NCBI RefSeq assembly: GCF_035594765.1
Contig: NC_085846.1
Span: forward strand, 57,461,190 to 57,525,189
Reading direction: 5' to 3'
DNA from: Anolis carolinensis
Taxonomy: Eukaryota
DNA: 64,000 nucleotides
This document shows, one piece after another, positions 11,801-60,918 of the stretch. The notes under the pieces were generated by a model that saw only the letters and a list, made by a program, of their open reading frames with translations, was not told where the DNA came from and did no database searches. The position numbers and the translations under genes are program-made. Position 1 is the stretch's first letter. Each line of letters starts with the position of its first letter.

Positions 11801-12849
11801 TACAGTAGAGCAGGGGTCCCCAAACTAAGGCCCGGGGGCCGGATGCGGCCCTCCAAGCTCATTTACCTGGCCCCCGCCCTCAGTTTTATAATATAATATT
11901 TTATATCATTTTAAATAATATAATATATTGTATATACATATAATATTGATAATAATATTATAATGTTATACAATATAATACTAATAATAATACCATATAA
12001 TAATATTAATTATATGTTATATATTACATATAATATTACAGTATAGTGGTATAGTTCAATATAGTAATATATAATGCTAATATTGTGCTATGCTAATAAT
12101 ATATTGTATGTACATACAGCTTCTGAGTCCCCTTCGGGGTGAGAAGGGCGGGATATAAATGTAGTAAATAAATGTAGTAAATGAACAAATAAATAATTTT
12201 AGACTTAGGCTCGCCCAAAGTCAGAAATGACTTGAAGGCACACAACAACAACAATCCTAATTAACTTGACTATCTCATTGGCCAGAAGCAGCCCCACACT
12301 TCCCATTGAAATCCTGATAGGTTTATGTTGGTTACAATTGTTTTCATTTTTAAATATTGTATTGTTCTTTCATTGTTGTTGCTGTTTTGCACTACAAATA
12401 AGATATGTGCAGTGTGCATAGGAATTTGTTCATTTTTTTTTCCAAATGATAATTCGGCCCCTCCACAGTCTGAAGGATTGTGGACCGGCCCTTTGAGGAC
12501 CCCTGCAGTAGAGTCTCACTTATCCAACATAAACGGGCCAGCAGAATGTTGGATAAATGAAAATGTTGAATAATAAGGAGGGATTAAGGAAAAGCCTATT
12601 AAACATTAAATCACATTATGATTTTACAAATTAAGCACCAAAACATCATGTTTTACAACAAATCGACAGAAAAAAGCAGTTCAATATACGGTAACGTAAT
12701 GTAGTAATTACTGTATTTATGAATTTAGCACCATAATATCGCAATGTATTGACAACATTGAGTACAAAAACATTGACTACTAAAAGGCCAACTGTATTGG
12801 ATAATACAGTACATTGGATAAGTGGAGGTTGGCTAAGCGAGACTCTACT

Positions 12850-12889
<40 letters not shown>

Positions 12890-15800: not shown

Positions 15801-18800
15801 ATAATAAAAGTGAATGTTTATATGTATGTTTGTGGCAGCATTTTGATTGGCCTGGCGGAATATGTGCTCGCATTTTGATTGGCCTGGCGGAATATGGGTC
15901 AGCTTTCTGATTGGCTGGGCGGAATGTGCCAGCTTTCTGATTGGCCGCCACTTTCATAGGCCACTGGGATTGCTGAGGGAAAAACTACTACCAACTGGCT
16001 TCGTTTGGCCTACTTCTCTCCTCAGAACGACACTAGCTTTGGGACAGTTAACAGCTTTCGGCCTACACTTTGGTAATCCAAAACACCACTGCCACCACCA
16101 GAAAGGCCGGACCTGGACCAAACTTGACACACATAACCTCATGAACCCACTGACAACGGATGGCCCCCTTTGGCCCCTCTGCTGACATGTTTAAGGCCTT
16201 CCAGGCTGGCCCCTCGCTGCTAGGCCGAAAAGACGCCATCTTGCCTCAGCTTTCAACTTCTTTGTAAGGCCCTACTTTCCTCAAAAGACAGCAGAGAACA
16301 TTGTTATTATCTTTTTAACGATATGCTTATGAACACTTCTAGCCCCCAAAGCCCCAATCCAAGCCTACTTTGATCATTTTGCTAACACGTTTCAGGCCTT
16401 GCAGCCTGGTTCCATTGTGCTAGGCCGCAAAAGAGGCAGCCATCTTCCCTGTTCCACATGGTTCCAAACAGAGCAGCTTTTGCCTGTGTCTTTTGGATAC
16501 AGCACTCTCCTTCAACAAGGTAAGGCGGCAGTACGTAAATACTATTCACAGCAGACTAAAGAGAAAATAATGACTATCTTTTTATTCTTTCCTTTTAAGG
16601 ATCGTTTACTCCCCCCCCAGTTTTTACTGAGGCAAAAAACTACCACAGAGCAGGCTTCGGCCTACTCACTCTAACAGGCTTGACACATACAGTCTCCATG
16701 GCCTACTATACATCCGGGTCCTGTTTGGAGTGGGATGGACCATGGATGATGGACTTGCATATGGGAGTTGTAGTTCACCTGCCCCCACTGAACCCTGCTA
16801 TTTCTTATTTATACTACTATTGCTTGACATTACTTTTATGTTTTATTTATATGGTGGATGTTAGCATGTGGCTTAATGACCTTGCAAGCCACTTTGGGTC
16901 CATTGCAGAAAGGCGGGGGAGAAATATCAGAATTAAATAAATACATAAATAAATAAATAAATGTCTCAATGGTATGTATGGTTGGAATGACCTTCTGTCG
17001 GGAGGGTTTGAATGGTCTCTTCCTTTGTGGCAGATGGGGCTGGACTGGATGACCTTCAGAGACCCCTTTCAAATCTAGGACTCTATCTATCTCCCAATCG
17101 TATTTGTGACTGGATGGCCATCTGTCAGGAGGGCTTGGATGGTGTCTTCCTCTATGGCAGAAGGGGGTTCAACTAGATGGGCACCCCTTCTAACTCTAGG
17201 ATTGTATGGAAGCCTTTAAACCAGGCACGGGCCAACTTGGGCCCTCCAGGTGTTTTGGACTCCAACTCCCACAATTCCAGAGAGCCTACCCCATGATGCG
17301 CTTTATGTCCTGGAGCCGTTTGCAGGATGATGGACCATGGGTGATGGGATATGTAGTACTTTCAATCGCTACGATTCCCACAGGCCACTGCGATGCCCAC
17401 CAGTGACGGAACTGGACCAAACTTGGCACATAGATGGGACATGCAGTACCTTCACTCGCTTCTTGAGACCACAGCAACTGCTACATATGACAGAACTGAA
17501 CCAAATCTGGTATATATATCCCAAATGACACACTTTATATGTTGCAGCAGTTTGGGGGAGGATGGACCAAGGACGATGGGATTTGCAGTACCTTCATCCA
17601 ATTCACCTCCCACAGGCCGCTGTGATTCCCATGAATGACAAAACTGTACCAAACTTGATACAAAGGTGCAATGTGGCCCCCTTTACGTCCTGATCTGGTT
17701 TGATGCAGGATGGACCTTGGATGATGGGATTTGCAGTACCCTTATCCTATTCACCTCCCACGGACCACTGTGATACCCATGAAAGACGAAACTGTACCTT
17801 ACTTGGCATACAGGTGCAATGTCACACAATTTATGTCCTGGTGTGGTTTGCAGGAGAATGCACCAAGGATGATGGGATTTCCAGTACCTTCATCCAATTC
17901 AACTCCCACAGACCACTGTGATGCCCATGAATGATGAAACTGTACCAAACTTGACCTATAGGTGCAATGTGGCCCACTTTACATCCTCCTATTATTTGAG
18001 GGAGCAACAGACCATGGGTGATGGGATTGACAGTACCTTCACTCACTTCCCCAGACCACTGCAACCCTCACCAATGTCTGATCAAGACCAAACTTGACAC
18101 ATCGAGTCCCCATGACCTGCTTTACATCCTGAAGCTGTTTGGAGGGGGATCGACCATGGACTTGCATATGGGAGTTGTAGTTCACCCGTACCAACTAAAG
18201 CCAACTGACACTGGATCGAGACTAAACTTGGAACAAAGGCAAACAATTCAGTTCTCAAATAACCCGGGCACCGCCGGGTCCCCAAGCTAGTACCTCAATA
18301 AAACCAGAAGTTGGGAGGATTTCCTAAGCCAGGTGCTAAAACCATGGAACTTAGCTCTAACTCTGAGAAAGATGGAGAAGTTTGGAAGTCTGATCACAGA
18401 GACACTATCATGGATTAAAAGCTTCTAAGTAATCGTATCAGGCCCAGGGAGCCAACAAAGACATGGCTTACCCCTCCCATTATCCTGGCCTACTGCCTGC
18501 CATCTTCATCACTAGATCATTTCCCTGCATCCTAAGACATGCAAAAAGGCAAGGAGGCTTGAAGGGATTTGTAGACTACCTGGATTCCTGAAGCTCAATA
18601 AAAACTGTAAACAGCCATTTGAGTGCCTGATTTCATTATGTCAGCAGACATCAGTATGGTGTATCTTCCCCAAGCAGGGTTAGGAAACCCAGAAGTATCC
18701 AAATAAATGAAATAACACCAGATAAACTATAGGACAAGCAAATGAGAAGCATGCAGAATTTGCTCCAAGACTAATCTACAGTCTATATGGATATGGATAT

Positions 18801-21800
18801 GCTTGTATGGGGGGAGCTGGAACTAAATAAAGGTGACCAGGAGACAGAGAAATGAAATGATCTCTTTCTTCTTAGGGAAAGGGGTTACATGGGATTTGGA
18901 AGGAAATTAGAAGAAATTAAAGATCTTTATTGTAGAATAGGTTTGAAAAGAAGAGGGAAGTTAATGTCAAAGCAAGAATAACTTGAAAGAAATTGGCTAC
19001 TCGAGCTGGAATGCAACTTAATTGTGAGAAGAGACTAGGAGAAAATGGTGTAATAGAAATAATATTTTGAGAGACATGTAAAGGTGAGAAAAAAGTTATG
19101 AAATACAAAATCTTCTCTGCTTAGTGCCTATGGAGTTGTACATTCTGATTGTAATGAGAGATGGGACTCCAGAGTCAACATACATACTTATCAAATTTAC
19201 TGCTACAACCATTTTATAAAAAACCAATCAAATAAAAGGTTGAAAATGACTGAAAGCATTAGATTGAGAAAAATATCACCTTACAAGAAATTCTAGATGA
19301 TCTTTTATAGCAAGCTTCAAAATCTCAGTAAAAATGTTCTTTAAAACAGAATAATTTCAAACACTCTTTGTAACATGACAATGGAAAAAAAAGAGTTAAT
19401 TTAAAATCCGGGGAGCGGAGTGAGCGCCCGCTATTAGCCCCAGCTTCTGACAACCTAGCAGTTCGAAAACATGCAAATGTAAGTAGATCAATAGGTACCG
19501 TTCCAACGGGAAGGTAATGGTGCTCCATGCAGTCATGCCGGCCACATGACCTAGGAGATGTCTATGGACAACGCCGGCTCTTTGGCTTAGGAATGGAGAT
19601 GAGCACCAACCCCCAGAGTTGGACATGACTGGACTTAATGTCAGGAGAAAACCTTCACCTTACCTTTAAAATTGTCAAAAGATTAGTGAATTGTTGAGCT
19701 CGCCTTTGTATGATTTTGGACTTCAGAAGAACAATTCTTTTATACAAAAGTACTTAATGGACACTGCTCATCTTCACAATGTAAAACTGAAGCACAAGTG
19801 CAAAGTTTTTTCAAGGGCCAATCTTGACTTAGCCAAGGTCATAAACAGACCTAGCATACTATCAATCTACTTACTCTTGTTATTGCCAAAATCCACAGTA
19901 TCTATATTATGCATCATTATATTTACTGGGTTCATAGGAATATAGATGAATTGTTTCTTCACATATACTTAGAAATTAACTAATATGATTTCATTTGTTA
20001 CACACACACACACACACACACACCTCAGGTTCTCAAGTAAGTCACTTTTCCAGAGAACTAAATGAATTGTACAGTAAAATATAAATATTTACAATATTTG
20101 CTTTAGTTGTATCATATGGCCCTCCAGATGCTGCAAGGATCAAACCTAGCATAGCCAATAGTGACAAATACTGGTTGCCGAAGTCCAACATCTGGAAGAT
20201 GACATGGTCCCACCCATCTGATCTAGATATAAATGTTTTGCTGTGTACCTCAGCTTCAGAATCCTTCAGTTTCTGAACCTTTTCTTTGACTTTCATTTCA
20301 AAGACTTGCTCCATTTCCATCTCCATTTTTTTCATCTTTGCCACATGCTCTCTTCTTTCTTCTTCCATCTGTGCCAGAGGGCTCCTGCCATAAATCAAAG
20401 ATGGTTGATTATTCTGTTTCCTTTTATAAATATATGATTGATATCAAATCATTAGACACACACCAAAAGGAAGCAAGCAACATTCTGACAGTGATGTAAC
20501 CCACAATTAACAGGTGTCTAACAAACTAATAGTAGTGTTCAAATGGTTTCCCATCACATTTTTTCTCTACTACAGCCACAAAGATGATGAAACCACGGGT
20601 GGGGTGGGCAGGCTCTATTCTACCCACAATGGCACAATTTCCAGGAAAAGTAACACTGTGAAGGAGGGAAAACACCAGACTGAGGCAGTGAAGCTTTAAT
20701 ACCACAGGTCTATCTAATGCAGATGTGATGGTCATTCTCAACAAGAATATACCATCACCGAAACCATCAACACAGTTACACTGAACTGTATTGTCTTTCA
20801 GTGTGAGTGGCTATTGGTCGAATAGTGTACATTTCTCCTACTACTATAATCTTATTACTGTATTAAGCCACATATTTTTATTTATAACTATATTGCATCA
20901 TTTGTGGCACTGACACTTAATGAATGAATTGGTGTGATAGCATGGAATGGTTCTTGACTGATGGCACCAAGCCATTTGCTGATCTATGTCTGTGTGAGGT
21001 CTGAGTGCTTCAATTTGACAAGGAGGCCATTTAATTGGAAAACAGACAGAAAGGAGGATGCAAAGAAAGCTTCCTGGGCGAAATTAAGAATAAAGTGTTT
21101 AAAAGAAGGTTAAATGCGCTGTTCAAAATTGGAAATAAAGAATAGAAAAGATATTGGAGGGGGATGACAAAAGAGAGAAATTAATATTTCACATATGTGA
21201 GCCAACTAGCCAATTATTTGATGTGGATTTGTAGTAAGATGATTTATTATATTAAATACTTCCAAAGTTTTCAATACTGTTATTGCAATCCTATAACCAT
21301 TCCAATAGATCCAATTGTATGGCTAAAAGGACAGAACTGTGGTATTTAACTGATTTATTATATTCAGTCACAAATGCTTCACTATTTTTCTAGCTAATGC
21401 ATTCATATCATACATAGGTTGAAACACCAAAATATACTATAGAGTACAACCTGAACATGCTATGATCCAATCACTGCTACATTATTATTCAACAAGGGAA
21501 AACTAGGGATGTGTCCAATAATGCAAGTGCATTGACTACGAATATTAATCACCAGTCGCCTGGACATTCATGCAACACAAAATGTGAAAAATATATAAAC
21601 AAGTAGCAACCAACCAAATCAAAGTCAACTTTCACTTTACCACCTATAATCGTAGTAAACAGATACTGACATTTCTTGAATATTTTTTCTTTTAATCTGT
21701 AATAGTTTAGAATCACAAGCAGTGTGATCCCAATAAGCTGTTTTCAAAATGACCCAGGCACCTGGAGAAGAATTTATATTCTATCACTAATATCACCTAT

Positions 21801-24800: not shown

Positions 24801-27800
24801 GATATTAAATAGAACAGGAGACAAAACAGAATTCTGTGGGACTGTGGCCAAGGCATCAAAGAGGAGTACCCCAGCACCACCTTCTGAGTTTGCCCTCCAA
24901 GAAAGATGAGAGGCAATGCATAATCGTAACCTCATCATCCCAGATAGGTGGTCCAGAATGGTACCAGGGTTAGTGGCATCTAAAGCTATTGAGAGGTCCA
25001 CCAGACCCAAAAGGGATATATTCCTCCTGTCCGGTTTCCTGTTTACATCATTCACCAGAATGAGTAAAGATTTCCCATAACTAGGCCTGAAACTAGATTG
25101 AAATGGATCGAGATCCAGAAACCACTGGAGTGAAATTGCAGGGTTATCAAGAGGGAATAGATGACAATTGTTCCCAGTTGACTTTGACACGTTCTACAAC
25201 CTCAGTGCCAGTTGTCCTCAGGATCAAGTCTAGTGCCTTCTGATAATGGCTGAAGACAAGTCTCCATGAGAGAAGGGATCTGTTCTGAAATGCCCTATAT
25301 GAGTAGCAGCCATCAATTAAGACCTCATCCGAATAACAAATATCAATCGACCTAGCAATTATCTCCAGAATAGGACTAGGTAAGTGAGACATAGACAATG
25401 GAGAGATTAGGACCTGAGGTAAGGACAGAAGTGGCTTCTGGGTGGGGGCAGGAGGTTCCAATGTAACTGAGGGTATCTGGGATGGGCTGAGTCAATAGCT
25501 TTCTGCTTCTCCTTCTTAAGCTCCAGTGTAGCCACCGAACATTTTCTTTCTGCAGTTGCTTCTCTAGAGACTTTTAAGGAGAGGAACATCTTCAGGTTTC
25601 TGAATCCTGGAAACAGGCATCTCAGGCAGTTGAGGCCAAGGGTGCTGACACTTTATTTCAAGGAAGTCTGAGCAGCAGCTAAAGTGTTTTGGCTTGACAG
25701 GTGACCTGTTTGGTGCTCCACAGCCAAACACATGAAGAGGCACATAGCCAATGAAGTTTTATGAAGTGGCTTAATGCAAGCTGAATGTGGGGTCCTTTCC
25801 GAGGCAGAGGAGACAATATGTGTAACTATCTAACAGTGGTACTTTCACAGGACAGGCAAAAAAATATTGAAATAATGTTTTGGAGTCATATGCCCCTGGT
25901 GATGTGGAGAATGCCAAAATGCTTGAGAACTTCTTAATGATCTTATTGTGATGGTGGGCAGAAGGGAAGTAAATTTTAGTGGGAAACAACAGCTTATATC
26001 TTTGTGAATGAGGGGGCAGGGTTACCATTAAAATGCAGTAATAGGATCTCTGTGAAGGTACAGAATGACCCAACTGTGTGACCCACAGAGACCATGAAGA
26101 AGGGGATTTAAAGGCAGATGGTTAATTAGATATATTCTGATAAAAGGCAATAGTAGATGAAAGGCAGCAAGAAGCAACCACTTTGTCCTGATGGTGTTGA
26201 GGATGGAAGCACGCTTATACATATACCAGGTTGGCTGCTATTGCTGGAAGACAATACTACCTAACTATAATGAAACATGACCTCTGCAAGCCATTTATAT
26301 GATATCTACATCCTTCCCTTAACTGCCAACTCTTTGGTTGGAGAATGTTTTCAAATACTCTGGTAACTACAATAGAATCTCGCTTATCCAACGTAAACGG
26401 GCCGGCAGAACGTTGGATAAGCGAATATGTTGGATAATAAAGAGGGATTAAGGAAAAGCCTATTAGACATCAAGTTAGATTATGATTTTACAAATTAAGC
26501 ACCAAAACATCATGTTAGACAACAAATTTGACAAAGTAGTTCAATACGCAGTAATGCTATGTAGTAATTACTGTATTTACGAATTTAGCCCAAAAATATC
26601 ACAATGTATTGAAAACACTGACTACAAAAATGCGTTGGATAATCCAGAACGTTGGATAAGTGAGTGTTGGATAAGTGAGACTCTACTGTACCTACAACTT
26701 TAGAAGCAAGAATGGAAGCTGATGAAATGCTTCAGGAACAATTTACCTGTTAAATACTGAAAACCTATGAACAGATTTCTTCTTTCTAAAAATGCTCCCA
26801 GTTTCAGTCACTAAAAATATTTAACTTTTTGTTAGGGAAGCTTTAGAATAAAACCATTAAAGCAAAATAAATGCAAAAGCTGAAAATAAAAGTTTTTTTT
26901 AAAAAAAATTACACTTAACATTAAAAATCTTATTTCTTTTAAGCCTTTTTTCTACAGTCTTGAAAAATTTAAATGACCACTTACATGCCTTCAACAGTGT
27001 CAAATCTAAAAAACAAAAAATACAGATGCTTAGCATGCTTAAATAAAGCAATAAAAATAAAAGTCAGTAATTAAAAAAGCAAATTCGTTATGGATTTGAA
27101 GCTACTTTGGTTTATTTGCTCCTTGTAAGCAGGATTTCCACTGTAAAGTGAAATTCTGTTAGTTAAAGTTAGCTAAGTTTTGGTTTTCAATATTGTTAGT
27201 GACGTGTTGTACACAATTAGTGGAGAACTGATGTGCAAAGCTTTTGAGAACAATTTACTTATACCGGTATACCATAAGTCATACATGCTCTCTAAGAAAG
27301 AATTTAAATATTTTAGTGACATTTGTTTGACTTCTCAAAATAAACACAACCCACAGCTGTCTCTAGGCCTATGCTACTATTCAGATTTAAATAACTGATG
27401 CTAGAGAAATTCCATTTAACTGGCCAGCAGAGGTCTCAGGATGGGTTTTGGAAAAAATACCCACTACAATTAAGATTATAACATGGCAGCTATTAGCCTC
27501 TTCGTAAATGATTTACTAAAGTATCCAACTTTTTAAAAATGATTTTTCCAACCAGGACACACATAAACACTGAATACTGGCCAGCAACACCATCATATTC
27601 TATGACAAAAGCTGTTAGACAAGAATCTGAAACTATATGTAAGACAATGCAGCTGATACAATAAATAGATTTCCATAATTCCACTATTTTGTCCTAGCCA
27701 ATATTCTAGCTGTGATATTCAGCACTACTGAAGTCATCTAGATGTAACATACAAAGCTTAAAAAGCCGACTAGGCAAAAATTAAACATTGTCAACCCCCA

Positions 27801-39800: not shown

Positions 39801-42800
39801 AGTCGTCACATTCTCGTATGTAGACTCACTATCAATGTACTATGTCGTTTTTAATCACAGGGACACTACTAGCTTTGAAAAGTCAACATTAAAGCAGTGA
39901 TTGGGTATTACTGGCTGACAGCAACAAAAAGCTCGAAATACATCTAACTTTGTCATCTCTGCAAAAAGAAACTGGCAAAATGTCAAATGCATTTTAGGTA
40001 CCTAGCAATTACGATCATTCGTTTTCCAATTTATGTGGGAAGAATTAACTTTTTCATTGTTGAGATAAGATCAGTGAACACATTTCCCTTGTCAGGAGAT
40101 ATATCACGCTATTCATGTTTTTTTGCCTCCAGGGGAGAAGTGTATTCACTGGTTGAAGTGCTATAAATTACTCTGAAGATTAAATTCTGAAGTTACACTG
40201 TGAAATGGAGAAATGGTTCAGGAGTTGTACAGAAGTAATTAATGCTAGTTAATATGAGAGTTTCCACTCACCTGTTTTTTAAACTGTTGGCATTCTTCAG
40301 GTGTAAGAGTGTCTGCTTTGGCAATGAGTGGAATAATATTCACCTTTTCATGCAAGCGCTTCATGAACTCAATATCCAAAGGCTTCAGCCTAACAAGATA
40401 AAATACATATAAATATAAATCAAAATCAGCATAATTTAAAATATTGTCTACAATTCTAGCCACTGAACCGCAAAGACAACAAAACAAAACAAAACATGTT
40501 AGTAGTAGTCTAGAAAGAGGCAATCAGAAATAAAGGATTACGTTTAGAAAAAATGTCCAAGTTTTATTTACACAAAAACATTCAAAACTAATGGTGCAAA
40601 TTATGTTACCCTAAATTCAAGAATTAGCTTACAGTATTTTAAAATTAGAAAATTCAGAGGATACATACAGTAATACGAAATTAATATAAGCAGACTCAGC
40701 AGAACAAATACTGTAATCAGAAAAGTATGGTTATACAAGTCCTAGTTACTGAACATCTAATTCCTAAAGTCCAATCTGGATTTTGTGCAAACAATTAAAA
40801 TAATTTTGCCAAAAAAATTAACCATGTTTGCACAGAAAAATGTAAATTTATGGGCTGAACATTTATACTTGAAGATGTTTTAAGATAAAACAAAAATACA
40901 TTGAGTACTAACCCATGTCCTGAGGGAGCAATGAAGTATAGGCAACACTGCACCCTGTTATCTGGCATCTGACGTCTGTTCACACGTGATTCTGCATTGA
41001 GATAATCTTCAAATTTACTGTCAATGTAGTCAATAACTGGTTGCCAGCTAGGAAACACACAGTGACATTTTTGTATCAGTCATTGAACTTGTAATTCAGC
41101 ACAACACTAGATGAAGTGCTCATTTTGCTATGAAGTTTTAATATAGTCGATTAACTATATCACATGAACACAATTAACATACTGTACTTTAATATTTCAA
41201 ATCTAAGTGCTATTTTTTCAGATTATATGCAGAACTATATTTGCACTCAACATACTTATTGCCAATAAATAGGATGCATTGCTACAAGGTTTTCCAGTCA
41301 CTATTAAGTGAAAGAGCAATTGCCCACCAGAAAGTGGACAAGTGGCTAAGCACATCTGCTCCTTACAGTTTCTGCCCACTTAGAATCAAAGAAACATAAG
41401 AGTCGTAGGGTTGAAATAGACCACAAGGGCCAACCAATCCAATCCCCTGCCATGCAGAAAAACAGAACCAAAGCACCCCACTTAAAAAAACCTCCAGAGA
41501 AAAAGACTCTACCACCCTCCGAGGCAGCATATTCCACTGCCAAACTAGTTTACTATCAGGAAGCTCTTAATAATGTTTAGGTGGAATCTCTTTTTCTTGC
41601 AATTTGAAACCATTGCCATGTCCTAGTCTCTAGAGCAGCAGAAAACATGCCTTCCTGCTCCTCACTGTGATATTCTTTCAAATATTTACAAATGGCTATT
41701 ATGTTCTTTCTGAACTTTTCTTTTCTCCAAGCTAAGGATACACAACTTCCTAAGCCGCTCCTCATAGGACATAGCTTCCTGCACTTTCACCTCTCTGGAC
41801 ACATTCTAGCTAACCAAAATCCTTCTTGAGCGGTGATGCCCAGACTAGACACAGTACTCCAGATGAGGTTTGACCAAAGCAGAACAGAGTGGACCTATCA
41901 CTTCCCTGATCTGTACTCTGATGCAGCTTAGAATCACATTGGCTTTTTAGCTGCCACATCACACTGTTGACTCATGTTCACTTTATGGTCTACCAAGACT
42001 CCTAGATCCATTTTCAATATACTGTTTCCATACCAGGTGTCACCCATCCTATATCTGTGAATTTCATTTTTATTGTTAAAATTCATTTTATTAGTTTCAG
42101 CCCAACTCCCTAATCTGTTCACATCATTTTGGATTCTGATCCTGTTCTCTGGGGTGTTAGCTATCCCTCCCAATTTTGTGTCATCTGCAAATTTGCTAAG
42201 CATGCCTTCTATTCCATGTTGAATAGCACTGGACCCAGTACAGAAACCTGGGGCATCCCGATGATTTTTCCTCTCCAGGATAAAGAGGAGCCATTGGTAA
42301 GCATCCTTTGAGTTTGGTCAACCAATTCTGCCACTAGAAAACATAATGCATTTCCCATTTCCTTATGACAGTAATTAATATCTAGATGTAGGTCAGTCTA
42401 ATATCTGTACAAAAATGAAGTCTCTTGCTCATTTGCCATTTAACCAGGGCCCTCCAGATGTTCCAGATGTCAATTTCCAGAAGATCCAGCTACTATAGCT
42501 AATGGCATGGAATTATGAGAACTGAATTGTAGTCTTTAAATAAAATTTATAAAAGCCAAATGTTCCTTGCTCCTGATTTAAAGTTTGGAGAAAAGGAGAG
42601 CTGCACATTACTCTTATGTGTAGAAATACATGAGGATCTGCTGTAGTAAAAGGAAAGGAAAGATAATGTATACAGCAAGAAGACAAAGCAGAAGAAGAGA
42701 TAATAAAGTGAAGCTAATGGTACAAATGGAAAAAGTATCAGAAAATAAGCTTATAACAAACAATCCCCAACATTACTGACAAAGCATATAAAAAGATAAA

Positions 42801-48800: not shown

Positions 48801-51800
48801 GAAAAAAAAAAGCCTGAAGCCTATACAGATTGCAAGCAACAGATGTGGCAACCCCACAGACAAAACAAATGATGTAATAATATCCGATCTAAAATATGAT
48901 TTTAAAAAAAATCACAGCTTTCTCTGAGGACAAGAGAATGTAATGTGAAAGAATGTTTTCCAAACATACCTGCACAGTCTTCTTTATTCTATGTGAAGGT
49001 CCTGGATATTCTGGAGAATACAGCTCTGTCAGGAACAGCGAATTGATTAATGTTGATTTCCCCAATCCAGATTCACCTATTGGCGAGGGAATGTCACCAG
49101 TTAGAGGGATTATCCATGGTTACTAAATGGTTTAAAATACTTTCCAAATCAATTATTTTAAAAATGATAGGAAATATTTCAAATGAGACACAAATAAGTT
49201 ACTGTGTACAACGCAAAGTAAGACTTTTCTCATTTTCCTATTCCCAGTCAACCCTGGTCATTGTCACCTGAGCCCCAAGTCTCCTTGGAAAACTATTCGA
49301 ACAACTACGGTTTTTAAAAAGGCTTGCTTCAGTATGGTTCACATGGGTGACATTCATCTGAGAATATGAGGACAAACCATAGTATCCTGTTTCATCTGAA
49401 CAGGGAAATTATATTAATTAGATCCACAAGAAGCCAGGATTTTATATACAATCAAAGCACAGTATAATAATTTAGTTCCTAAACTGGGCAAACACAGCAT
49501 CTATGTTCAGAAGAGATGAGAAAATCTTATTGGAGATCTCCTGGTTTAATGGTGGCTGAGTGTAATTTGCATCTTTTAAGACATCAATGCAACATGTAGA
49601 ATCTATTTAGTGGAAGGCCCTTGAAGCCTGAATTTCATTCCTACCAAGACCATTTATCTGCCAATAAAGGTCAAACTTAAAAGAGTTTCAGAACACATGG
49701 ATATGATTTCTGATAAAACCCAGACAAATGCTTTTTCCCAGACGTTTACTATAGGAAACCCCCATCAACATTAGAAAATTATCGTTTCAAAACAGAAAGG
49801 CAAAATAACTTGTTCTGTAGCATCTTAATATGGCAACCCCCCCCCCCAAATTGTAATTGAGACTATGTGAAGTAACTTATTTCTAAACAAGCAGGTCTCT
49901 AGTATTCTATATACTGTATATAAAAATGTTATGGACTTTTGGCCTAGAAGTAGGCAACGAAACTACACGACCAAGAACCACAAAACTTCGCAACACAACC
50001 CAACGACCTTGCCGCTAGGTTCCTACAACAAAACCCAACATCTGGGATGGAACCAGGACCCCAAAAATCCCAAAAATAGGAAAAAGCCATCTGCGCTTGC
50101 GCCGCTGCGGCCATCACGCGCCCCACCCCCCTCAAAGGTTGCTCGCACGCTCGCCTATTCCTGCTGCCACAACCATCTTCACAATGTGCGCGAGGAAATA
50201 GAGAGGGCGAATAAAGCGGTGGGTTACTCTCCGGGGCTCACCGTTTCTTCGGCGCTTTCCTTCACCGTTTCACCAAACCCACCGCATCTTTGGAAGGCGG
50301 AAAGAAAGAAACACTGCCCAGGAAGACAGCAAAGGCGGCGAAAGCAACAACTGTGGCTCAGCAAGGTGAACCCTATGCGGGGAAGGGAGGGAGGGAAGAG
50401 GCTGTGAGAGCAAGGTAGCCTCAAGACCCTGTTGGGGGGGGGAGGAAAGGGGGCGGCCGGGCGCCTTTCAGGTGACAAAAGCCCGCACCCACACGAGGGA
50501 CTCAAAATGGTGATGATGGACACACCATCCTCGAAATTGCGGCCCTCACGACCCTATCCACTGCCAGACTGCTATACATGTCTATGCCAGGCATCCTCAG
50601 AGATTATGACATCAGTTTAAAAAGAGACAAGTGGGATATTTATCTATCTCAGCAATGATATCCAGGATGGGACAACTCTTATCTGTCTGAGGCAACTGTG
50701 AATGTTCCACTTGGCCACCTTCATTACCATTGAATGGCCTTGCACCTTTAAGGCCTGCCTACTTCCTGCTTGAGAGGGGGAATCCTTTGTTCGGAGATAT
50801 TCGCTGGCCCTCATTATATCATGTCTGGCATTCCCTGATCCCTCACTGCTATTCTTTATTTAACTGTCCTGATTTCACTGATTTTTTTAATACTGGGAGC
50901 CACATTTTGTTCATTCCAGGTAGGCAGGAAGCATCCAGCTTTTGAAGCTAAAAGGCTATTCAGTGCCGATTGCAACATTCACACTTGCCTAAAGCAAACA
51001 ACAGTTCTTTCTTCCATCCTGGTCATTCCACAGAAATATAAACCCCACTTGCTTACGTTACAACACATTTCACAACCTCTGAGGATGCCTGCCATACACG
51101 CAGGCAAAATGTCAGGAGAGAATACATTTGAAACATGACCAGGAGAACTCAGAACAACCCATTACAAAGAGAAACAAAAATAATAAAATAAATACAAATA
51201 CATAAAATAAAATAATAAAATATAATATAGTAGAGTCTCACTTATCCAACGTTCTGGATTATCCAATGCATTTTTGTAGTCAATGTTTTCAAAACATCAT
51301 GATATTTTGGTGCTAAATTCGTAAATACAGTAATTACTACTTAGCATTACTGCGTATTGAACTACTTTTTCTGTCAAATTTGTTGTATAACATGATGTTT
51401 TGGTGCTTAATTTGTAAAATCATAACCTAATTTGATGTTTAATAGGCTTCTCCTTAATCTCTCCTTATTATCCAACATATTCGCTTATCCAACGTTCTGC
51501 CAGCCTGTTTATGTTGGATAAGTGAGACTCTACTGTACATACAAATAGTAAAATAAAAGAATACAAAAACCAAAGAATAACAAAGAATAACAAAAACAAT
51601 ACAATAAATACAAATAATACAATAAAAATAATGAAAAACAAGAACAAAAAATAAAACAAAATTAATACAATAAAATACTGTAATAAAATAACTAAAAATA
51701 ATATAATAAAATCATAAAATATAATAAATAAAAATAATAAAATAAAATAAAATAAAACATTTAAAAAAGGAAAATAAAAAATCCACAACAATTTTTAACC

Positions 51801-54609
51801 AATACCACCAAACTATGCCACAGCAACGTGTGGCTGGGCACAGCTAGTATTCTATATGGGAAAGCACCATAATACAAATTCTTTCCCACTCAATTATTTG
51901 TAAAATCAGTGACTGGCTTGACATGTTTCAAGTTATTTTTATATATGTTTAAGTTTAAGTGTACTAACTCATAATTATCTGGCATAAGGATCTGTTCTAT
52001 TCAAATGCAAAGATGATATACATGAATAAAGAAAAGTTACTTTGTTCTAATATGGTTGTTACATAAAAAACCCATGCCGATTATCTCAGAATTGTGACAA
52101 TGAAGTTACTGGCTCTCATAAAAAGTCAATTTGTAGTGGAAAATGGTTGAGGGCTATGTACAAACTGATAGAGTGAAAGACTGAATTATTTTCAGATAAT
52201 AATCAATAGACCTAGAATAACCTTTTTAAATTTGAAAAACAACCCTATAATACAAAGAGCAGCTTACAGTCGCCTTACTTTTGTTTGTGTATATGGAAAT
52301 TGTGTTTAAGTCTACAAATTTTGGCTCAGATTAACAGCCAATGATTATTTTCTACTCCCTAGCTGTGACACCTATTTCTACCATGATCCTGCAATAATTA
52401 TTATGTTGCTGCAAAAGCTTTTTCATTCAGGCAAAACCCATATCTCTGTGCTAGATTTGTTTACTAGACGTGCCTCAACCCAAGCAATTTGGTGCTGCTC
52501 GTCCTAAGCAATTTGTCAAGCTTCTCCTGTATCTCTCTACTGAGGATAAATGGTAACAACAGACCTAGCCTTATCGGTCAAGGGAAAGGACACTTTTTGG
52601 AGTTGGAGAAGACAAAGACCATGGCATCTACAGATGAGTGCCTGTATTTTACCATCATGGTTTTATACACATGCTCACCTAAGGTCTATACAAAACAGTC
52701 CTGCCTGCTGGCATCTGTGCATATAGTGTAAATATCTGCAATAACAAAGATATTGCTCTAATAATATTGTATACAAAGAATGGTATGAAACTCCAGCCAT
52801 GCAACATCACAGACAAGATGCCTTGCTATTTTGTGAAAGCTTATGCCATATGCACAAATGTCAGGGGCATGCCTACTTGTTATATGCAGTGTAGGCATAG
52901 TTACTCAGTATGGTTCACTTCCCCCAATGTGAATTGGACAAGTCTCAAAGTAAAATTACTAAACAAGGCTTGAATAATTTGTACCTATTACCCTATAATA
53001 GTTAAAAAAGAAATTTCTGGAAAGTAAAAAATTAGGAATTAATGAGGTTCTCTGATGATCAAATTCCTGATTCAGACAGACTTAAAATTGTGAAGAATGC
53101 GAAATATAATGATTAAGGCAGAAAAATAACATAAAAACAATAATTAAAGCAGCAAACAATTGCCCCAAAATCTTTTAGGATATCTCTCAATTAGATGTAA
53201 TAATAATATAAAACAGAGACAGAAAGGAAAATGGTCATGTCTAAAGCCAACTTATTTGCGAAATATAATAATTTTGCTTCTGTCCAGTGTATGCTAAATA
53301 CAGTTTACAAATTATACTTAAAATAACTACCATCTATCTATAATTAGCTAAATTAATTCTAACCAACTTTTTAGACATGCCATTTGGGTTCAATCCATTG
53401 TGATTGCCAACAAAGGCTCTTATTCTAGTATTTAGCTCAGTGATTCACAAACTGTGTGCCCAGGCACTGTGAGGCACATCAAGGAACCCAAAGGAGAACC
53501 ATAGAAAATTTAATCTGCATTCCTTTTTTCAATTGGTTTAAAACCTTGGCATTTCAAGTTAAAGTGCAAGAAGGAGCAAACCTATCTTTGCCCAAGAAAC
53601 TAGAGAGTGGTTGCCACACAGAATAGATTACACTAGGCTTGATAAACTGATCAACATAGCACAATAAATCCATGTGTGAGTTTATGCTAGGCTGAGCCAT
53701 ATATCACCACCATCCCTAAACAGCTCCTCATAGAGTCAGTTCTTTCTTCATGGAAGGCAGACAGGAACACAGGAGTGTCTGGCTATGTTCCCACAGCAAA
53801 ATGTGGAATGATTACAATTAAGACCTCTAAAGGACCCTGCCTATCTTTTCATAACTGGCTATAGGAAGAATTATCAGTGATCCTGTCAGCTGTCCATTAA
53901 GTAGGGGATGGTTCTTTTAGAGGCTGTTCAGAAAGCTGAAAGGTTGGTATTACATACAGATTAAAAGAACACCAACCCTCGCAGTACACCCCAAAAAGAC
54001 ATAAGCATGTGTAAGAAAAACTTATGTATGTATGTATGCAAGAGGATGCCAGGGTGCACATAAAGGCAGCTTTGATTTTTTCATTATTAAAGCATTTATT
54101 ATTTCTTTAAAATAATTAATAAGAAATAAATGTCAAAACCTGCTGAAAAACTTTTCCAAACTCTCTTCATCTAAACGTTTTTCCCAGATGTCTTAATACA
54201 GGGGTCCCCAAACTAAGGCCCGGGGGCCGGATGCGGCCCTCCAAGGTCATTTACCTAGCCCCTGCCCTTAGTTTTATAATATAATGTTTTATATCAGTTT
54301 TAATCATATAATATATTGATAATAATATTATCATGTTATAAAATATAATACTACTAATAATACCATATAATAATATTAATTATATGTTATATATTACATA
54401 TAACATTACAGCATAGTGGTATAGTTCAATATGACGATATATAATGCTAATATTGTGCTATGCTAATAATATAATGTATTGTATGTACATACAGCTGCTT
54501 TGAGTCCCCTTCGGGGTGAGAAGGGCGGGATATAAATGTATTAAATAAATGAATAAATAAATAATTTTTGACTTGGGCTCGCCCAAAGTCTGATATGACT
54601 TGAAGGCAC

Positions 54610-54650
<41 letters not shown>

Positions 54651-57600
54651 CCTAATTAACTTGACTATCTCATTGGCCAGAAGCAGGCCCACACTTCCCA
54701 TTGAAATCCTGATAGGCTTATGTTGGTTAAAATTGTTTTCATTTTTAAATATTGTATTGTTCTTTCATTGTTGTTGTTGTTGTTTTGCATTACAAATAAG
54801 GCATTTGCAGTGTGCATAGGAATTTGTTGGGTTTTTTTCCCTTTCAAATGATAATTCAGCCCCTCAACGGTCTGAAGGATTGTGGACCGGCCCTCTGCTT
54901 TAAATGTTTGAGGACCCCTGTCTTAATACTTCCATTTTCCTACATTTCTCCTACCAAGAAATTGCCTGGACAACTGCCTTGAAAATACTAGAGTTACCCA
55001 TATTTTCCAGAACAGTTTAAACTATTTCCCTTATTAGTGCAAATTAGATAGTATGTTAATTTTGTGAAATAATACTCCTTGTTGTGAGGTTACTGAAAGG
55101 ATGCGGGCAGGATAGGGATGTACTGGGAAAAACTGCAAGTTATTTTTGTTATAGTTGTACAATTGTACATAATTGCTACAATTGAGGAAACTTCAGGGGC
55201 TCCTTTCACCCTCATTTTTACACCTATTGGGGTGAAACTTGCTACAATGGTAGAACCACTTTTAGCCCACCAAGTTTCAGAACATTTCACATCCACGGAT
55301 TTTTATATAAACATTTTTTAAAAAATAACAACAGCTATCTCCTTGAATTTTCTACACAATGACACAAGATAATAGGGGATCATTCCCCCCAACTTTCAAA
55401 AATATTCATACATCTACTGATTTTAGAGAATTGTTTTTAAGAATTCTGGAAAATGTAGTTTAGGGCATGGCCTTTATCTGCTATAGGGCTTCTCACTTTC
55501 CCAAACTACATTTCCCTGAATATTGTGCTTTCTTTTCCAGAGAATCTGCTTTCTCCTGTTTTTCCTCTCCTAATGGTGAGAGGACAGGCAGCCTTTCTGG
55601 CTTTGATTTGCTTCCTTGCGCAGAAAATAAAACTGACTTTTGGGGGCTTCTGAGATTTACAAAATGCAAATGAAAAAGTACTGAGTAAGTTTAGATTCTT
55701 ACGTTTTTGGCATGGGCCATGCCCACCTGTCAAGTATTGCCTCGTAAATATGAATTTAACAAATGTAATACGACTTACGAAAACTAATGAAAAATGCACA
55801 TCTCTACTTAGTACTATTCATTTCAATGGGTTTGCCTTAGATTGGTTATCACTGGATTTCAAATAAATTTAGGAGGAAGCAAGACACAATCCACATTCTA
55901 GCACAGGGGTCCTCAAACTTTTAAAGCAAAGGGCCGGCCTACAATCCTTCAGACTGTTGAGGGGCCGAATTATCATTTGAAAAAAAATACGAACAAATTC
56001 CTATGCACACTGCACATGTCTTATTTGTAGTGCAAAACAACAACAACAATGAAAGAACAATAAAATATTTTAAAATGAAAACAATTTTAACCAACATAAA
56101 CCTATCAGGCCAATGAGATAGTCAAGTTAATTAGGGTTGTTGTTGTTGTTGTTGTTGTTGTTGTGTGCCTTCAAGTCAAGTGGGCGAGCCTAAGTCTAAA
56201 ATTATTTATTTATTCATTTACTACACTTATTTATTACATTTATATCCTGCTCTTCTCACCCCGAAGGAAACTCAGAGCAGCTGTATATACATACAATATA
56301 TTATATTATTAGCATAGCACAATATTAGCATTATATCTTACTATATTGAACTATACTGTAATATTATATTTAATATATAACATGTAATTAATATTATTAT
56401 ATGATATTATTATTAGTATTACATTGCATAACATGATAATATTATCAATATCATCTATATATATAAAAGAGTGATGGCATCACGGCGATGGACAAAACAA
56501 CAAATCTACAGCCCCCCCAAACTCGAAAATTGGCAACGCAATCCATCATCCCCGCCTCCAGTAAGATACAACAAATTTACACATAAAACACTATCACAAC
56601 ACCAAAAAATGCCAAAACTAAGTACGCATGCGCAAAAACACCATGCTTCAAACCTTTATGGCGCTCGCGCGGCTCCAGTAAGATTTATAGGACAAACACA
56701 ATCACAGGGCCACAAACGGCCAAAAACTGCAACAGGCGATGTGCGCCTGCGCGCACCCCCCATCCCTTCCCGCGCGCGCACACACACACCTCGCCTCAGA
56801 GCTGAAGGAAGGAAGGCAGGAAGGCTGATTCCTTGCTGGGCGCGGGATGGAGGAGGCCGCGCTGGGAGGCGTGCGGGCCTCACGTCGCTCTCTGCCCTCT
56901 CCCCCTCAATGTCCTCCCCCCTCAGGGCCCATGGAGGGCCCCGGTTGCCGTTCAGGCCCCCTCCTCCCGCCCCTCTCCCCTCCCCCCAATGCGAGGAAGG
57001 CCCCGCGGAGCCCCCCCCGCCTCACCCTCTCTCCTCCTCCTCCCTTCTCGGTTCTTCTCGGAGGTCTTCAAGCTCTTCAAGGTGAGGGGGGAAGAGGAGG
57101 GCACGGCCCTCGAGCAGGCCTGGACCTCCCCTCGAGTTGTTTGGGGCGCCAACCCCCGCCCTTCCCGGCCTCAGGGCCCTTCCTTTTCCCCCTCACCCGG
57201 TTAAACGGCTGATGGGGAAAAGGAAAGAGCCTCAGGCCAGGAAGGGTGGAAGTTGGCGCCCAAAACAAGTCAAGGGAAGGCCCAAGTTGGCCCAGGCTGA
57301 GCTTCCCCCTTTTCTGTTGTTGTTATTGTTGTTGTTGTTCTCACCCACAAATGACAACCCCTCCAATGCCTCAGAAGCCCCCCTTTTTCCCCTCTCAAAC
57401 CCTATCGCCCTCACCTTTCCCTTCCCTGTAATAATTATTAATATAATAACTGATCATCAGTTAAGAATGTAATAATCACCAATAATAATACTAATTTATT
57501 ATTAGTATAATACTGATAATCATTCGAGAACATAATAATTCATAATAATAGTCAGTTCTTATTATTATAACACTGACAATCATTCAACAATGTATTAACA

Positions 57601-58661
57601 AATCGTAATAATAGAAAATTATTTTTATTATTATAGTAATAATCATTCACAAATTAATAATTATTATTATAACATTGATAATCATTCAACAATATAATAA
57701 CAACTAATAATAAGTAGTTATTATTTTTATCACAATGATAATCATTCAAGACTATAATAATTATTATTGTTATAACAGAAGGCGCCTCATATAATCCACT
57801 TCTAAACAAATAATATCACATTATAAATATACACTAGAATCTCACTTATCCAACATAAACAAGCCGGCAGAACGTTGCATAAATAAATATGTTGGATAAT
57901 AAGAAGGGATTCAGGAAAACCAATTACACATCGAATTAGGTCATCATTATACAAATTAAACACCAAAACATCATGTTATACAACAAATTTGACACAAAAA
58001 GTAGTTCCATGCGCAGTAATGCTATGTAGTAATTACTGTATTTGCAAATTTACCACCAAAATATCACAATACATTAAAAACACTCACTCCAAAAACATTG
58101 ACTATTAAAAGGCAGACTCCATTGCATAATCCAGACCATTGCATAAACGAATGTTGGGTGAGATTCTACTGTAATATGAAATAATTACTGTGGTACAATA
58201 ATACACAACAATATCATCTCAGGACAGTAAATAAAGATCAACACTCTAAAAACACAGCTATTCCATCCAGGAAACAATCAGGGCCATCTAACACCTCCCA
58301 CCAAAGGATTCCCCCCTTCACACAGGAAACCACCCACACTTTGAACCTACAAGGCCATTCCGTACTCATCACTCTCTCATCTCAGCACAGTAAATAAACA
58401 ACAACAGTTTGAAAACACACAAATTCCATCCAGGAAACAATCAGGACCACCTAGCACCTCCCAACAAAGCATTCCCCCCCTCTAACACACGGAACCACCC
58501 AAGCTTTGAAACTACAAGGCCATTCCGTACTCTGGGGCCAATTTGCAATATATTAATATATATAATAATACAATACATATATAATACAATACATTGTATA
58601 TACATATAATACTGCTAATAATATTATAATACACTACAATATAATACTAATAACAAAACAA

Positions 58662-58705
<44 letters not shown>

Positions 58706-60918
58706 CTACTAATATTGTGAAATAGTCGTATATGTTATAGCGTAATATCCTATCATATGTCTTTAATGTAATAAATGAATAAATAATACTGTATAATTTT
58801 TGTTGACGGTCACAACAAAAATAAAACCCAATGTAGATTGACCAACATCACTAAAAAAAAGCCACAGCAACGCGTGGCCGGGCACAGCTAGTATGTATAT
58901 ATATTATATTATTAAAACTGATTTATTTATTTCGTGTCAAAAGCATTGGTACAGCAAATACATTTCAAATAATGGAAATAAAATAGAAAAGAAAAGAAAT
59001 CACAAGCAACTAAATAGTTTTGGACCAAAACTGATATAAAAATATTATATTATAAATGAGGGCGGGGGCCAGGTAAATGACCTTGGAGGGCCGCATCCGG
59101 CCCCCGGGCCTTAGTTTGGGGACCCCTGTTCTAGCATGTTAGAGGCAGCATAACCTCTAGGCAATTCATAAATGGGCATATCTAATCAATACTCTTCAAT
59201 TCCCACAAAGTGGAGGATTAAGTAGCAATTCCCCCCTCTAAACTACTGGAAGTAGTTTGATATCATCTGAAAAGTTTCAAAGAGCAGGATTCCATGATTC
59301 TTCCTTATCTGTTTTATAGATTATAATTGTAATTCCAACCAGTTATCTTCACAATAAAATGTTATGCTCTTCAAAAATCTTTTGAGATTTCTAAAAATAG
59401 ATGGTAGAACCCTAAGTGTTAATATCAAAAGATACTTTCAATAAAGGTGCTTCAAAACTAAATATGTGACTCTAATCACAGGTCTCACATAATATTTGCA
59501 ATCTCTGCACTTTCCACACATTAAATTTCAAAAGTATTAAAAAGGTTACTAATTTCAGTGCCATGATTTAAAACTATTGTGGCCCATTGATTGCACAAAT
59601 AGATGAATAAGCAACAGTGACAACAAATGCAGATTAAAACATAATACAGAACAATGCAGCGTAGAATGTTTCAAGCTAGGTTTCATAATCTTTCCCACAG
59701 TAGCTTCAACCCATGCTCTGCAAAACTTATAACTTAGACAGAAACCCAACAATAACAAAGAACCTGGCCACCAAAAACAAAAAAAGCTTTGACACTCCTG
59801 AGTTACTACTTCTATGCTTAACTTGCAGTCAACATAACTGCTCCGCAGACACATTTGCCTCATTTATAGCAAATAAAATGTTTCATGCATAAATACAGCA
59901 CATAAATAATGCACTTGCCAGACAGGAGCTCTCTGACATACACTTCAGATTTTTTTGTACCACCAGTATTTCGCTATACACTCATGTATAAGTCTATTAA
60001 TTTTAGTCAAAAAATCAACCCAAAAAACCTCAGCTGTGTTATTAATGAGTCAAAGTAAGTACTGAACTTTAAACCTTATAAAAAATGAACCATCATCTTC
60101 TCTGAGCAGAGCGGTGAAAGGAGAGTGCTTAATCTATACTGGGAAAAACTAAAAGAAGCACCAACTTCCCCTTATTGTCTCTGCCACAACACTGCTTTTG
60201 GCTTTTTTGAATGCCTGAGCCGGGAAATGGAGGCAGTGAGTAGGGGCTGCTCCCCCCACCTCCAAGTTGGCATTGGTGCTCTCCCCTATTCGTGGAATGA
60301 CCCTCGATTTATCCACAGGTCATATAAAAATCCAGAATTTTGTCCTCAAAACCTGCCCTTGACATGTATACATGAGTATATATGAGTACATGAGTATATG
60401 AGTATATATGGTAGATAATATTCCAAGCATGTATGAAAACACCAGTTTTAGTATTGCAAACTGTAAAAAAATCCACTAGCAGATAGGATTTCAACTAAGT
60501 GGAAGTAGATTTTAGAAAAAAAAATAAAGGAATGCAGCTACACAACTACAGAGCCAGTCTGACAATATGCAGCTTTGCCTTGTAAAATCCTGAAACACTC
60601 TGTTCCTCTTTGGCTCTGTTAATGAGGGAAATGTTAGACTACCATTGCATGCCTCTTTCAATGCTTTAGTAAAAGAAACAAAAATGCAGGAAGTTTACAC
60701 CCTAACCAGTGCAGCCTAAACAAATGAGCCAAATAAAAAACACTTCAGCTTTTGAATGAATTTAAATTAACAGTCCCCCCATCTTCAGAAAATAAAGCAG
60801 CCATCTAGGCAACACATAATGAAAGCAGTAAAAGTGCCAAAGATTAATTCTTGGCAATTCTGGATTCAATATTTCATGCATCTTTTATGAGTGCCAGTTT
60901 CATAAGGATACTTATTGA

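Follow-up and report, generated by a model that had tools for sequence, protein, structure and literature searches.

Strand-specific hypermutation of guanine in the cargo of two non-autonomous Helitrons of one family

Within the window, the whole 64,000-nucleotide stretch of DNA that was analysed, a strand-specific hypermutation directed at G is limited to two Helitrons, both non-autonomous and from a single family, here termed Helitron A and Helitron B. The bias has a distinct spectrum, lies on one strand, is confined to the Helitrons and is independent of the orientation of the cargo. A preliminary description of the same DNA had read it as an acquisition of C and A by the top strand of the Helitron, defined as the strand that reads 5′-TC...CTAG-3′. 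This is borne out by the pooled spectrum and by a reversal of the bias with cargo orientation (p=2e-4). The data come from one 64-kb window, with about 140 substitutions counted over five cargo pieces of the two elements. The explanation towards which we lean, with some reserve, is deamination of bottom-strand cytosines followed by bypass during rolling-circle movement, which would lead to hypermutation of G on the top strand.

The elements and the main structural features of Helitron A are the following:

56454 to 58891, plus strand: Helitron A, non-autonomous, about 2.44 kb, with a TC start after A, a hairpin and CTAG end before T, and an empty site
58861 to 58891, plus strand: 3′ terminus of Helitron A, a GCCAC..GTGGC hairpin followed by CTAG
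57121 to 57284, no strand assigned: palindrome with 82-nt arms, 80% complementary, in the GC-rich cargo of Helitron A
49906 to 51847, plus strand: Helitron B, of the same family as Helitron A with other cargo, its 3′ end at 51817–51847 and its 5′ motif at 49917–49934

Helitron A is a genuine Helitron-type insertion. The 5′ end is a TC after a host A (boundary 56453/56454), and the 3′ terminus is an exact match to the 3′-end pattern that had been noted earlier. This pattern has two matches in the window (58861–58891 and 51817–51847), with none expected by chance. The GCCAC..GTGGC stem stops about 12 nt short of the terminus, and CTAG is followed by T at both 58891 and 51847. The 5′ motif at 56460–56477 has a single further occurrence in the window, that of Helitron B. 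Helitron A sits within a MITE-like host element (55905–59128), and its insertion is bracketed by a paralogous empty site (54262–54350) in an inverted sibling of the host element (54203–54921). After the CTAG, there are approximately 10 additional AT-rich bases similar to the 5′ end of the Helitron itself. The element contains short low-complexity ORFs only and no Rep/helicase ORF, and is therefore non-autonomous. Its cargo includes a CpG-island-like stretch of 65–69% GC. A captured kinase-like exon was considered as extra polarised cargo and rejected, as its frames are broken and of low complexity, with only FFSEVFK before a GT donor recognisable. A search of the palindrome against Rfam returned sub-threshold miRNA-like matches only. 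The window contains no runs of N.

Helitron B begins with TC at 49906, the base before it being T and not A. The termini of the two Helitrons align and their interiors differ, and within the window the 5′ motif and the 3′ end are common to these two elements alone. Across the last 31 nt of the 3′ end, two transition sites are the sole differences, whereas the sequence upstream has diverged. This is as would be expected if the termini were under selection for mobilisation. An exact-pattern scan for the Helitron 3′ end gave no match in metagenome and viral contig collections.

The bias was first described for a MITE carried by Helitron A. This copy and its closest free relative are:

57832 to 58173, plus strand: TA-flanked MITE in Helitron A with G-directed hypermutation, 25 private changes, asymmetry index 0.62
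12506 to 12856, plus strand: free MITE of the same long subfamily, a matched control with the same orientation and divergence as the copy in Helitron A

Seven siblings of this MITE had been claimed for the window and seven were located, six of them in the same orientation. The copies were aligned with MAFFT, and the counts are of private changes, those found in a single copy where all others agree. In the MITE of Helitron A these are G>C 8, G>A 6, A>C 4, A>G 3, T>C 2 and T>A 2. Compared with the seven siblings, it has zero private changes at any C and zero T>G. Loss of G amounts to 14 of 54 sites and loss of C to 0 of 38 (Fisher p=2.8e-4). A significant bias in G/C loss is absent from all seven siblings. 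The matched control, with 24 private changes, has lost G at 5 sites and C at 4, and its spectrum is symmetric.

The changes quoted in the preliminary description are all present, namely CAGTAG>CACTAG, TTGGAT>TTGCAT three times, ATGAT>ATCAT, ACAGA>ACACA and TTAGC>TTACC, together with AAGCAGCCAGG>AACCACCCACA and GAAGCT>GAACCT within 58220–58550. Its tallies for the MITE (about 9 G>C, about 4 A>C, several G>A and about 3 A>G) agree with the recount of 8 (9), 4, 6 and 3. The potential ninth G>C, CAGTAG>CACTAG, was left out since two siblings vary at that site. The reported lack of C>G and T>G was likewise accurate, with zero of either among the private changes.

The polarity of the changes can also be read from repeated motifs inside the MITE. 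The G of the TTGGATAA motif has been lost in three of five copies, which now read TTGCATAA; in the left terminal repeat, a complementary TTATCCAA copy has stayed unchanged. With three copies of the former mutated and the latter intact, the polarity is secure within the MITE itself. Some of the 25 changes are probably MITE-subfamily differences, which may be older than the capture.

Subfamily differences of this kind belong to a reading in which no special process took place, and the pattern stems from divergent subfamilies, horizontally transferred cargo, or assembly and base-calling errors. The MITE in Helitron A is indeed a member of the long subfamily, which is represented in the window by a single further copy, and the compensatory G>A / C>T pair in its terminal repeats resembles a subfamily trait. 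The motif copies inside this one MITE, however, act as an internal polarity control that speaks against such a reading. The remaining evidence on this point is provided by a second repeat family, family P, which is present in both Helitrons:

5396 to 6346: reference copies of family P outside the Helitrons, R1 (5396–5840, plus strand) and R2 (5975–6346, minus strand), from self-BLAST and alignment
58214 to 58371, plus strand: piece A1 in Helitron A, minus relative to R1, G loss 13 of 25
58374 to 58532, plus strand: piece A2 in Helitron A, minus relative to R1, a tandem duplicate of A1 to which it is 86% identical
50577 to 50915, plus strand: piece B1 in Helitron B, plus relative to R1 and thus opposite to A1 and A2
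50913 to 51161, plus strand: piece B2 in Helitron B, minus relative to R1, with few G sites

The references were R1, R2 and three shorter copies, all outside the Helitrons. Changes were scored at sites where the references agree and were read in the orientation of the Helitron. The reference copies themselves have an asymmetry index of -0.2. In A1 the spectrum is G>C 5, G>A 4, G>T 4, A>C 5 and C>G 1, and in A2 it is G>C 8, G>A 7, A>C 5 and C>G 2, with G loss of 17 of 25. The repeat pieces adjacent to the MITE had been described as equally skewed; A1 and A2 (58214–58532) have the same spectrum, and the bias extends further than was described. The label of Helitron given to the surrounding element is upheld by both ends and the empty site. 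The name Penelope for these repeat pieces was not confirmed: a search against Rfam gave no hammerhead for either the reference copies of family P or the Helitron pieces. B1 also carries the bias, with 12 G>C against 1 C>G, 10 G>A against 1 C>T, G loss of 22 of 62 and C loss of 4 of 39. The bias of B2 is not significant (G loss 7 of 27 against C loss 7 of 44; G>C 2, C>G 2), and neither is its difference from B1 (p=0.46).

When read in the orientation of family P, the ratio of G>C to C>G is 12:1 in B1 and 2:11 in A1 and A2 (p=2.1e-4 for the flip). As the changes flip with the orientation of the cargo, the bias is tied to the strand of the Helitron and not to the cargo, and a free-standing subfamily is excluded as the source. 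The preliminary description had named variants of such a subfamily as the finding that would count against it, and within the window this is countered by the flip between B1 and A1/A2. Ordinary divergence is strand-symmetric, in contrast to a bias that flips in this way. A1 and A2 share changes yet differ by 14%, which points to inherited differences, and the flanks of Helitron A and the MITE in Helitron B are clean. The absence of any special process is consequently regarded as highly improbable, and the sequence makes assembly error an unlikely source.

The tandem duplication also gives an indication of timing. A1 and A2 have 13 changes in common and 10 private changes, and 5 G sites have been struck independently to different bases. 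Since shared and private changes have the same spectrum, the process was active both before and after the duplication. Of the G sites of A1 and A2, 52–68% have been lost; in the MITE, at a distance of only 40 bp, the figure is 26% (p=0.04 and 5e-4). This inequality favours episodes over time and disfavours a single burst on the finished element. Together with the shared and independent hits, it hints that changes may accumulate over time.

The confinement of the bias was followed by a window-wide pairwise self-comparison, in which only non-Helitron partners served as references. The three affected Helitron segments have asymmetry indices of 0.37, 0.62 and 1.02, and 23 other repeat segments all lie between -0.38 and +0.38. 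The base composition changes along with the element: GC skew is -0.26 across Helitron A, compared with -0.06 and -0.07 in flanks of equal size, and the shift occurs near the ends of the element. When the C-over-G segments of the window are ranked, 57340–58709 comes first, and the second and fourth places also fall in Helitron A. Further skewed segments, 18789–19165 and 41430–42125, are found without either end motif of this Helitron family. The skew alone is therefore not diagnostic, and it is the polarised substitution counts that carry the argument. Helitron B contains an internal negative control:

51205 to 51540, minus strand: MITE in Helitron B, near the family consensus, asymmetry index 0.01, with about 6% mismatch like the free copies

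This MITE has no significant G/C bias and is probably a later insertion. Its unbiased state means that a position inside a Helitron at this locus is insufficient for the signature.

These observations bear on the possibility that the asymmetry was made in place, by R-loops or antisense transcription from a captured CpG-island promoter, or by the transcription asymmetry of a host gene. The R-loop route, in which the G-rich bottom strand of the captured island would be exposed, is in keeping with the CpG-island-like cargo of Helitron A. The splice signals of a host-gene microexon at approximately 26985–27005 lie on the minus strand. Both Helitrons are therefore antisense to the gene, and their top strand is its template strand, as the transcriptional route would have it. 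The whole window is also weakly skewed in the same way on the plus strand, with a GC skew of -0.033 and an AT skew of +0.053. However, the six sibling MITEs in the same gene and the same orientation are unbiased, one of them being equally diverged. The chief transcription-associated asymmetry is that of A>G over T>C, and these two classes are symmetric in the pooled data (12 against 9, not significant). The skew flanks the CpG island on both sides and ends near the termini of Helitron A. B1 has the signature without an equivalent skewed island beside it, and the MITE in Helitron B is unaffected. An origin in place is thus considered improbable.

For the pooled spectrum, the MITE of Helitron A, A1/A2, B1 and B2 were combined and de-duplicated. 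There are 33 G>C against 5 C>G (p=3e-6), 28 G>A against 5 C>T (p=7e-5) and 15 A>C against 3 T>G (p=0.014). No significant difference is seen for T>A and A>T (6 against 3) or for G>T and C>A (5 against 3). Of the G sites, 61 of 168 (approximately 36%) have changed, roughly evenly to C and A, whereas C and T sites stay at the background level of 7–8%. Without de-duplication, G loss is 38% against 7–11% for the other bases (C loss 7.7%, p=1.6e-12; T loss 7%). Neutral decay is expected to be strand-symmetric and dominated by transitions and CpG, and the data depart from this, the largest class being transversions to C. The preliminary description had stated that near equality of G>C and C>G after proper alignment would tell against it, and the two remain far apart in the counts given here.

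The spectrum can equally be read on the bottom strand, where it becomes 28 C>T, 33 C>G and 5 C>A, against 5, 5 and 3 in the opposite classes. Strand-coordinated C>T and C>G with a minor C>A component is as expected of an enzyme of the AID/APOBEC type. Such an enzyme should also leave A:T pairs unaffected, and the excess of A>C over T>G does not agree with this. With respect to context, TpC would be characteristic of APOBEC1, APOBEC3A and APOBEC3B, WRC of AID and CpC of APOBEC3G. On the bottom strand, changes have struck 17 of 36 GpC sites (47%), 23 of 55 TpC sites (42%), 13 of 43 ApC sites (30%) and 5 of 34 CpC sites (15%), and the sole significant effect is the avoidance of CpC (p=0.008). Sites equivalent to WRC were hit in 22 of 54 cases and equivalents of the SYC cold spot in 10 of 36. 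No clean deaminase motif emerges from the 3′ and 5′ neighbours or from the WRC and SYC equivalents, the pattern being neither that of TpC nor that of WRC. In GG pairs of the top strand, the 3′ G is struck and the 5′ G is protected. The change GGAT>GCAT, which corresponds to a bottom-strand TpC site, recurs three times in the MITE of Helitron A and once in A2. Between the arms of the palindrome at 57121–57284, A.C mismatches outnumber those of G.T by 8 to 1 (p=0.04), so that transitions are biased. Transversions are not (C.C 2, G.G 2), and the overall count of 11 against 5 is not significant.

The same spectrum could in principle arise from damage to the top strand, if G and to a lesser extent A were damaged in the displaced single strand, for example by oxidation, and miscopied during synthesis of the complement. 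The transferred strand of Helraiser, a Helitron reconstructed from bats, is the top strand. The bases that have changed here are its purines, with G at 36% and a small excess of A>C, and oxidised guanine products in single-stranded DNA can yield G>C. However, 8-oxoG, or an A inserted opposite a lost G, usually results in G>T, and this is rare (5 against 33 G>C). To produce G>A and G>C, T and G would have to be placed across from the lesion, and no common bypass rule provides for this. An exposed strand should also acquire C>T, and there are only 5/153. Oxidation in GG usually prefers the 5′ G, the opposite of the preference for the 3′ G seen here. Damage to the top strand is therefore judged to be as improbable as an origin in place.

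Selection among Helitron copies offers a different type of explanation, in which an A/C-rich top strand that is unfoldable apart from its 3′ hairpin would form an efficient single-stranded intermediate. A and C do not pair together, and the MITE of Helitron A folds as single-stranded DNA at -27 kcal/mol compared with -36 to -43 in its siblings. T is not depleted, however, with a loss of 7%, and A>C does not lower pairing. The five G sites that were independently hit in A1 and A2 point instead to a very high mutation rate. Helitron A also retains the palindrome with 82-nt arms, which has a fold of about -81 kcal/mol per 300 nt. As so stable a structure has been kept, selection against single-strand structure was rejected as a general cause, and this is the least probable of the explanations considered.

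Deamination of the bottom strand with subsequent bypass accounts more readily for the products. These are G>C and G>A opposite bottom-strand C, and A>C only opposite bottom-strand T, since A inserted there would be silent. There are two standard copying routes at a uracil or abasic site: REV1 inserts C, and templating by uracil or the A-rule inserts A. Sites opposite bottom-strand purines (T>C, T>A and C>A), at which spontaneous depurination would have its effect, show no excess. The lesions are therefore pyrimidine-specific and chiefly at cytosine, which favours deamination and uracil removal over generic abasic sites. Of the mechanisms put forward in the preliminary description, deamination followed by UNG and REV1 thus fits the spectrum, and bypass of generic abasic sites does not. 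About one third of the sites have changed, which by a rough estimate seems too much for spontaneous deamination in a brief exposure, and an enzyme therefore seems to be involved.

The Helraiser study reports that the plus strand alone is cut and moved, that the donor is resynthesised and reused, and that double-stranded circles replicate (PMC5876387). By analogy, a plus-strand transfer of this type, with the bottom strand as template, would produce the observed direction of mutation. Our view of the lesion, of the enzymes involved and of the connection with rounds of transposition is inferred and runs as follows. RepHel would peel the top strand off the donor, or the circle would replicate by the rolling-circle mode, and in either case the bottom strand would become single-stranded. 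The bottom strand of the donor or circle would thus be a lasting template that is briefly single-stranded and from which each new top strand is copied. Its exposed cytosines would be converted to uracil, probably by an enzyme of the AID/APOBEC type. The new top strand would then be copied past uracils and abasic sites, with insertion of A through uracil templating or the A-rule, or of C by REV1. The mutated top strand would move in the next round, so that changes would accumulate along the Helitron lineage. An APOBEC1 with DNA mutator activity has been reported in a lizard, together with G>A editing of lizard L1 (PMC3880073).

There are several points against deamination of the bottom strand. 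The known APOBEC signatures do not include an excess of A>C, which calls for a further assumption, for instance that uracil stood in place of T or that REV1 misinserted. If the transferred top strand were single-stranded too, C>T would be expected on it, and there is none in excess. The non-significant bias of B2, the absence of G>C bias in the palindrome and the want of a clean deaminase motif also weigh against it. The broader proposal that every rolling-circle round writes a deaminase/uracil-bypass footprint (top-strand G>C, G>A and A>C) into all Helitron cargo is put forward only tentatively, and we are inclined to doubt it.

Among the closest known counterparts are the clusters produced by APOBEC and AID on single-stranded nuclear DNA, which consist of C>T and C>G (SBS2 and SBS13), as in kataegis at resected DNA and DNA undergoing break-induced replication. 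Similar to these clusters, the Helitron changes affect one strand only, have about as much C>T as C>G on the bottom strand with a minor C>A component, and are far denser than the background. The logic would also be the same, in that an exposed single strand acquires uracil, which leads through UNG to insertion by REV1 or of A. The clusters are found in somatic tumour DNA, whereas the Helitrons are germline-inherited copies of a DNA transposon. Their signature differs by the absence of a clean TpC motif and by a T>G component (A>C on the top strand), and the host is apparently not a mammal and would lack APOBEC3. Its repeat content is suggestive of a squamate.

G>A editing by APOBEC has been described for L1 of the green anole, and the published screens cover retrotransposons and G>A only (PMC3880073). 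By analogy with these edited retroelements, the plus strand of the mobile element would lose G through deamination of its single-stranded complement. The edits of the retroelements are restricted to G>A and are made on reverse-transcribed cDNA (PMC3880073), whereas in the Helitrons G>C equals or exceeds G>A in number and no RNA intermediate is involved. The 'peel-and-paste' movement of Helraiser, as presented in the available text of two reports (PMC5876387, PMC4778049), supplies the strand asymmetry that the signature requires. That text contains no mutation spectrum, and the link to the signature is our own.

Similar to single-stranded DNA viruses and other rolling-circle replicons, the Helitrons have a life cycle that leaves a strand-specific composition. 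In the viruses and replicons it is the exposed strand that loses C and G to T and becomes T-rich. The transferred Helitron strand, in contrast, gains C and A and loses G, and the other strand therefore bore the lesions. Repeat-induced point mutation (RIP) of fungi likewise hypermutates repeated and mobile DNA, but consists of C>T at CpA on both strands of duplicated DNA, whereas in the Helitrons transversions dominate on one strand in a vertebrate. A non-exhaustive literature search, which included a 2022 review of the base composition of transposable elements, yielded no account of a strand bias in the mutation of Helitrons. The setting is thus new, and the kind of signature is that already known from strand-coordinated deamination and bypass on single strands.

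To our knowledge, the way in which Helitrons move in living genomes is still deduced from a single element, reconstructed from bats. A strand signature that is inherited and restricted to Helitrons would be natural evidence for the single-strand stage and for the identity of the exposed strand. If the mechanism is true, it would provide, for the first time, an in-vivo genomic record of the strand that is exposed and resynthesised in eukaryotic rolling-circle transposition. The signature would then serve as a counter of transposition rounds and as a clock for the capture of cargo. Captured genes and promoters would evolve far faster than by neutral decay, with approximately one third of G sites changed compared with 7–11% of the other bases, which matters for recognising and dating exons and promoters borne by Helitrons. 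A vertebrate cytidine deaminase would in that case restrict a DNA transposon, and defence by DNA editing would extend from retroelements to a class of DNA transposon.

Helitron A, a non-autonomous element on the plus strand, carries cargo (the DNA between its termini) of uneven composition. The base count over 57301-57831 is 39 G versus 99 C, and this interval includes a run of AT-rich tandem repeats.

Features of Helitrons A and B and of the surrounding window
54203-54921 and 55905-59128: MITE-like element present twice, each copy bearing the terminal repeats CAGGGGTC..CAAACT
57121-57284: spacer-free palindrome whose 82-nt arms are 80% complementary
57400-57800: AT-rich tandem repeats within Helitron A, unit roughly 60 bp, G nearly absent
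51844-51857 (Helitron B) and 58888-58901 (Helitron A): strings following the 3′ end, CTAG-TAT plus 5′-end-like sequence
26985-27005, minus strand: exon-like segment of 21 nt with polypyrimidine tract, AG acceptor and GTAAGT donor

The cargo at 50151-50576 of Helitron B, a member of the same family, is purine-rich and G-rich (GC skew +0.05) and is free of G depletion, the strand-specific loss of G to C or A on the top strand. This cargo was either captured recently or extremely G-rich at its origin. Strong skew occurs outside the two Helitrons at 18789-19165 (102 G versus 32 C) and 41430-42125 (189 C versus 98 G), and the end motifs of the Helitron family are absent from both segments.

The cargo of Helitron A at 56620-57330 is CpG-island-like, with a GC content of 65-69% and GCGCATGCGC-type motifs. 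It contains a short reading frame terminating before a GTGAGG donor, upstream of which the frames are broken and proline-rich. A search of the palindrome against Rfam returned only sub-threshold matches to miRNA precursors, as for a generic hairpin.

The two MITE-like copies are mutually inverted and lie about 1 kb apart, the second serving as host to Helitron A. The AT-rich 3′ part of Helitron A (58564-58730) is similar to the AT-rich core of this host family. The splice signals of the 21-nt segment, being on the minus strand, place the host gene antisense to both Helitrons.

Directly 3′ of both Helitron 3′ ends, CTAG-TAT is followed by a string resembling the family's own 5′ end (TCTATAT / GTATATAT). 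Directly upstream of the 5′ TC of Helitron B is CTCTAGTAT (49898-49912). These flanking end-like strings look like what is left of a junction, either head-to-tail or from a circle, or of read-through beyond the 3′ end.
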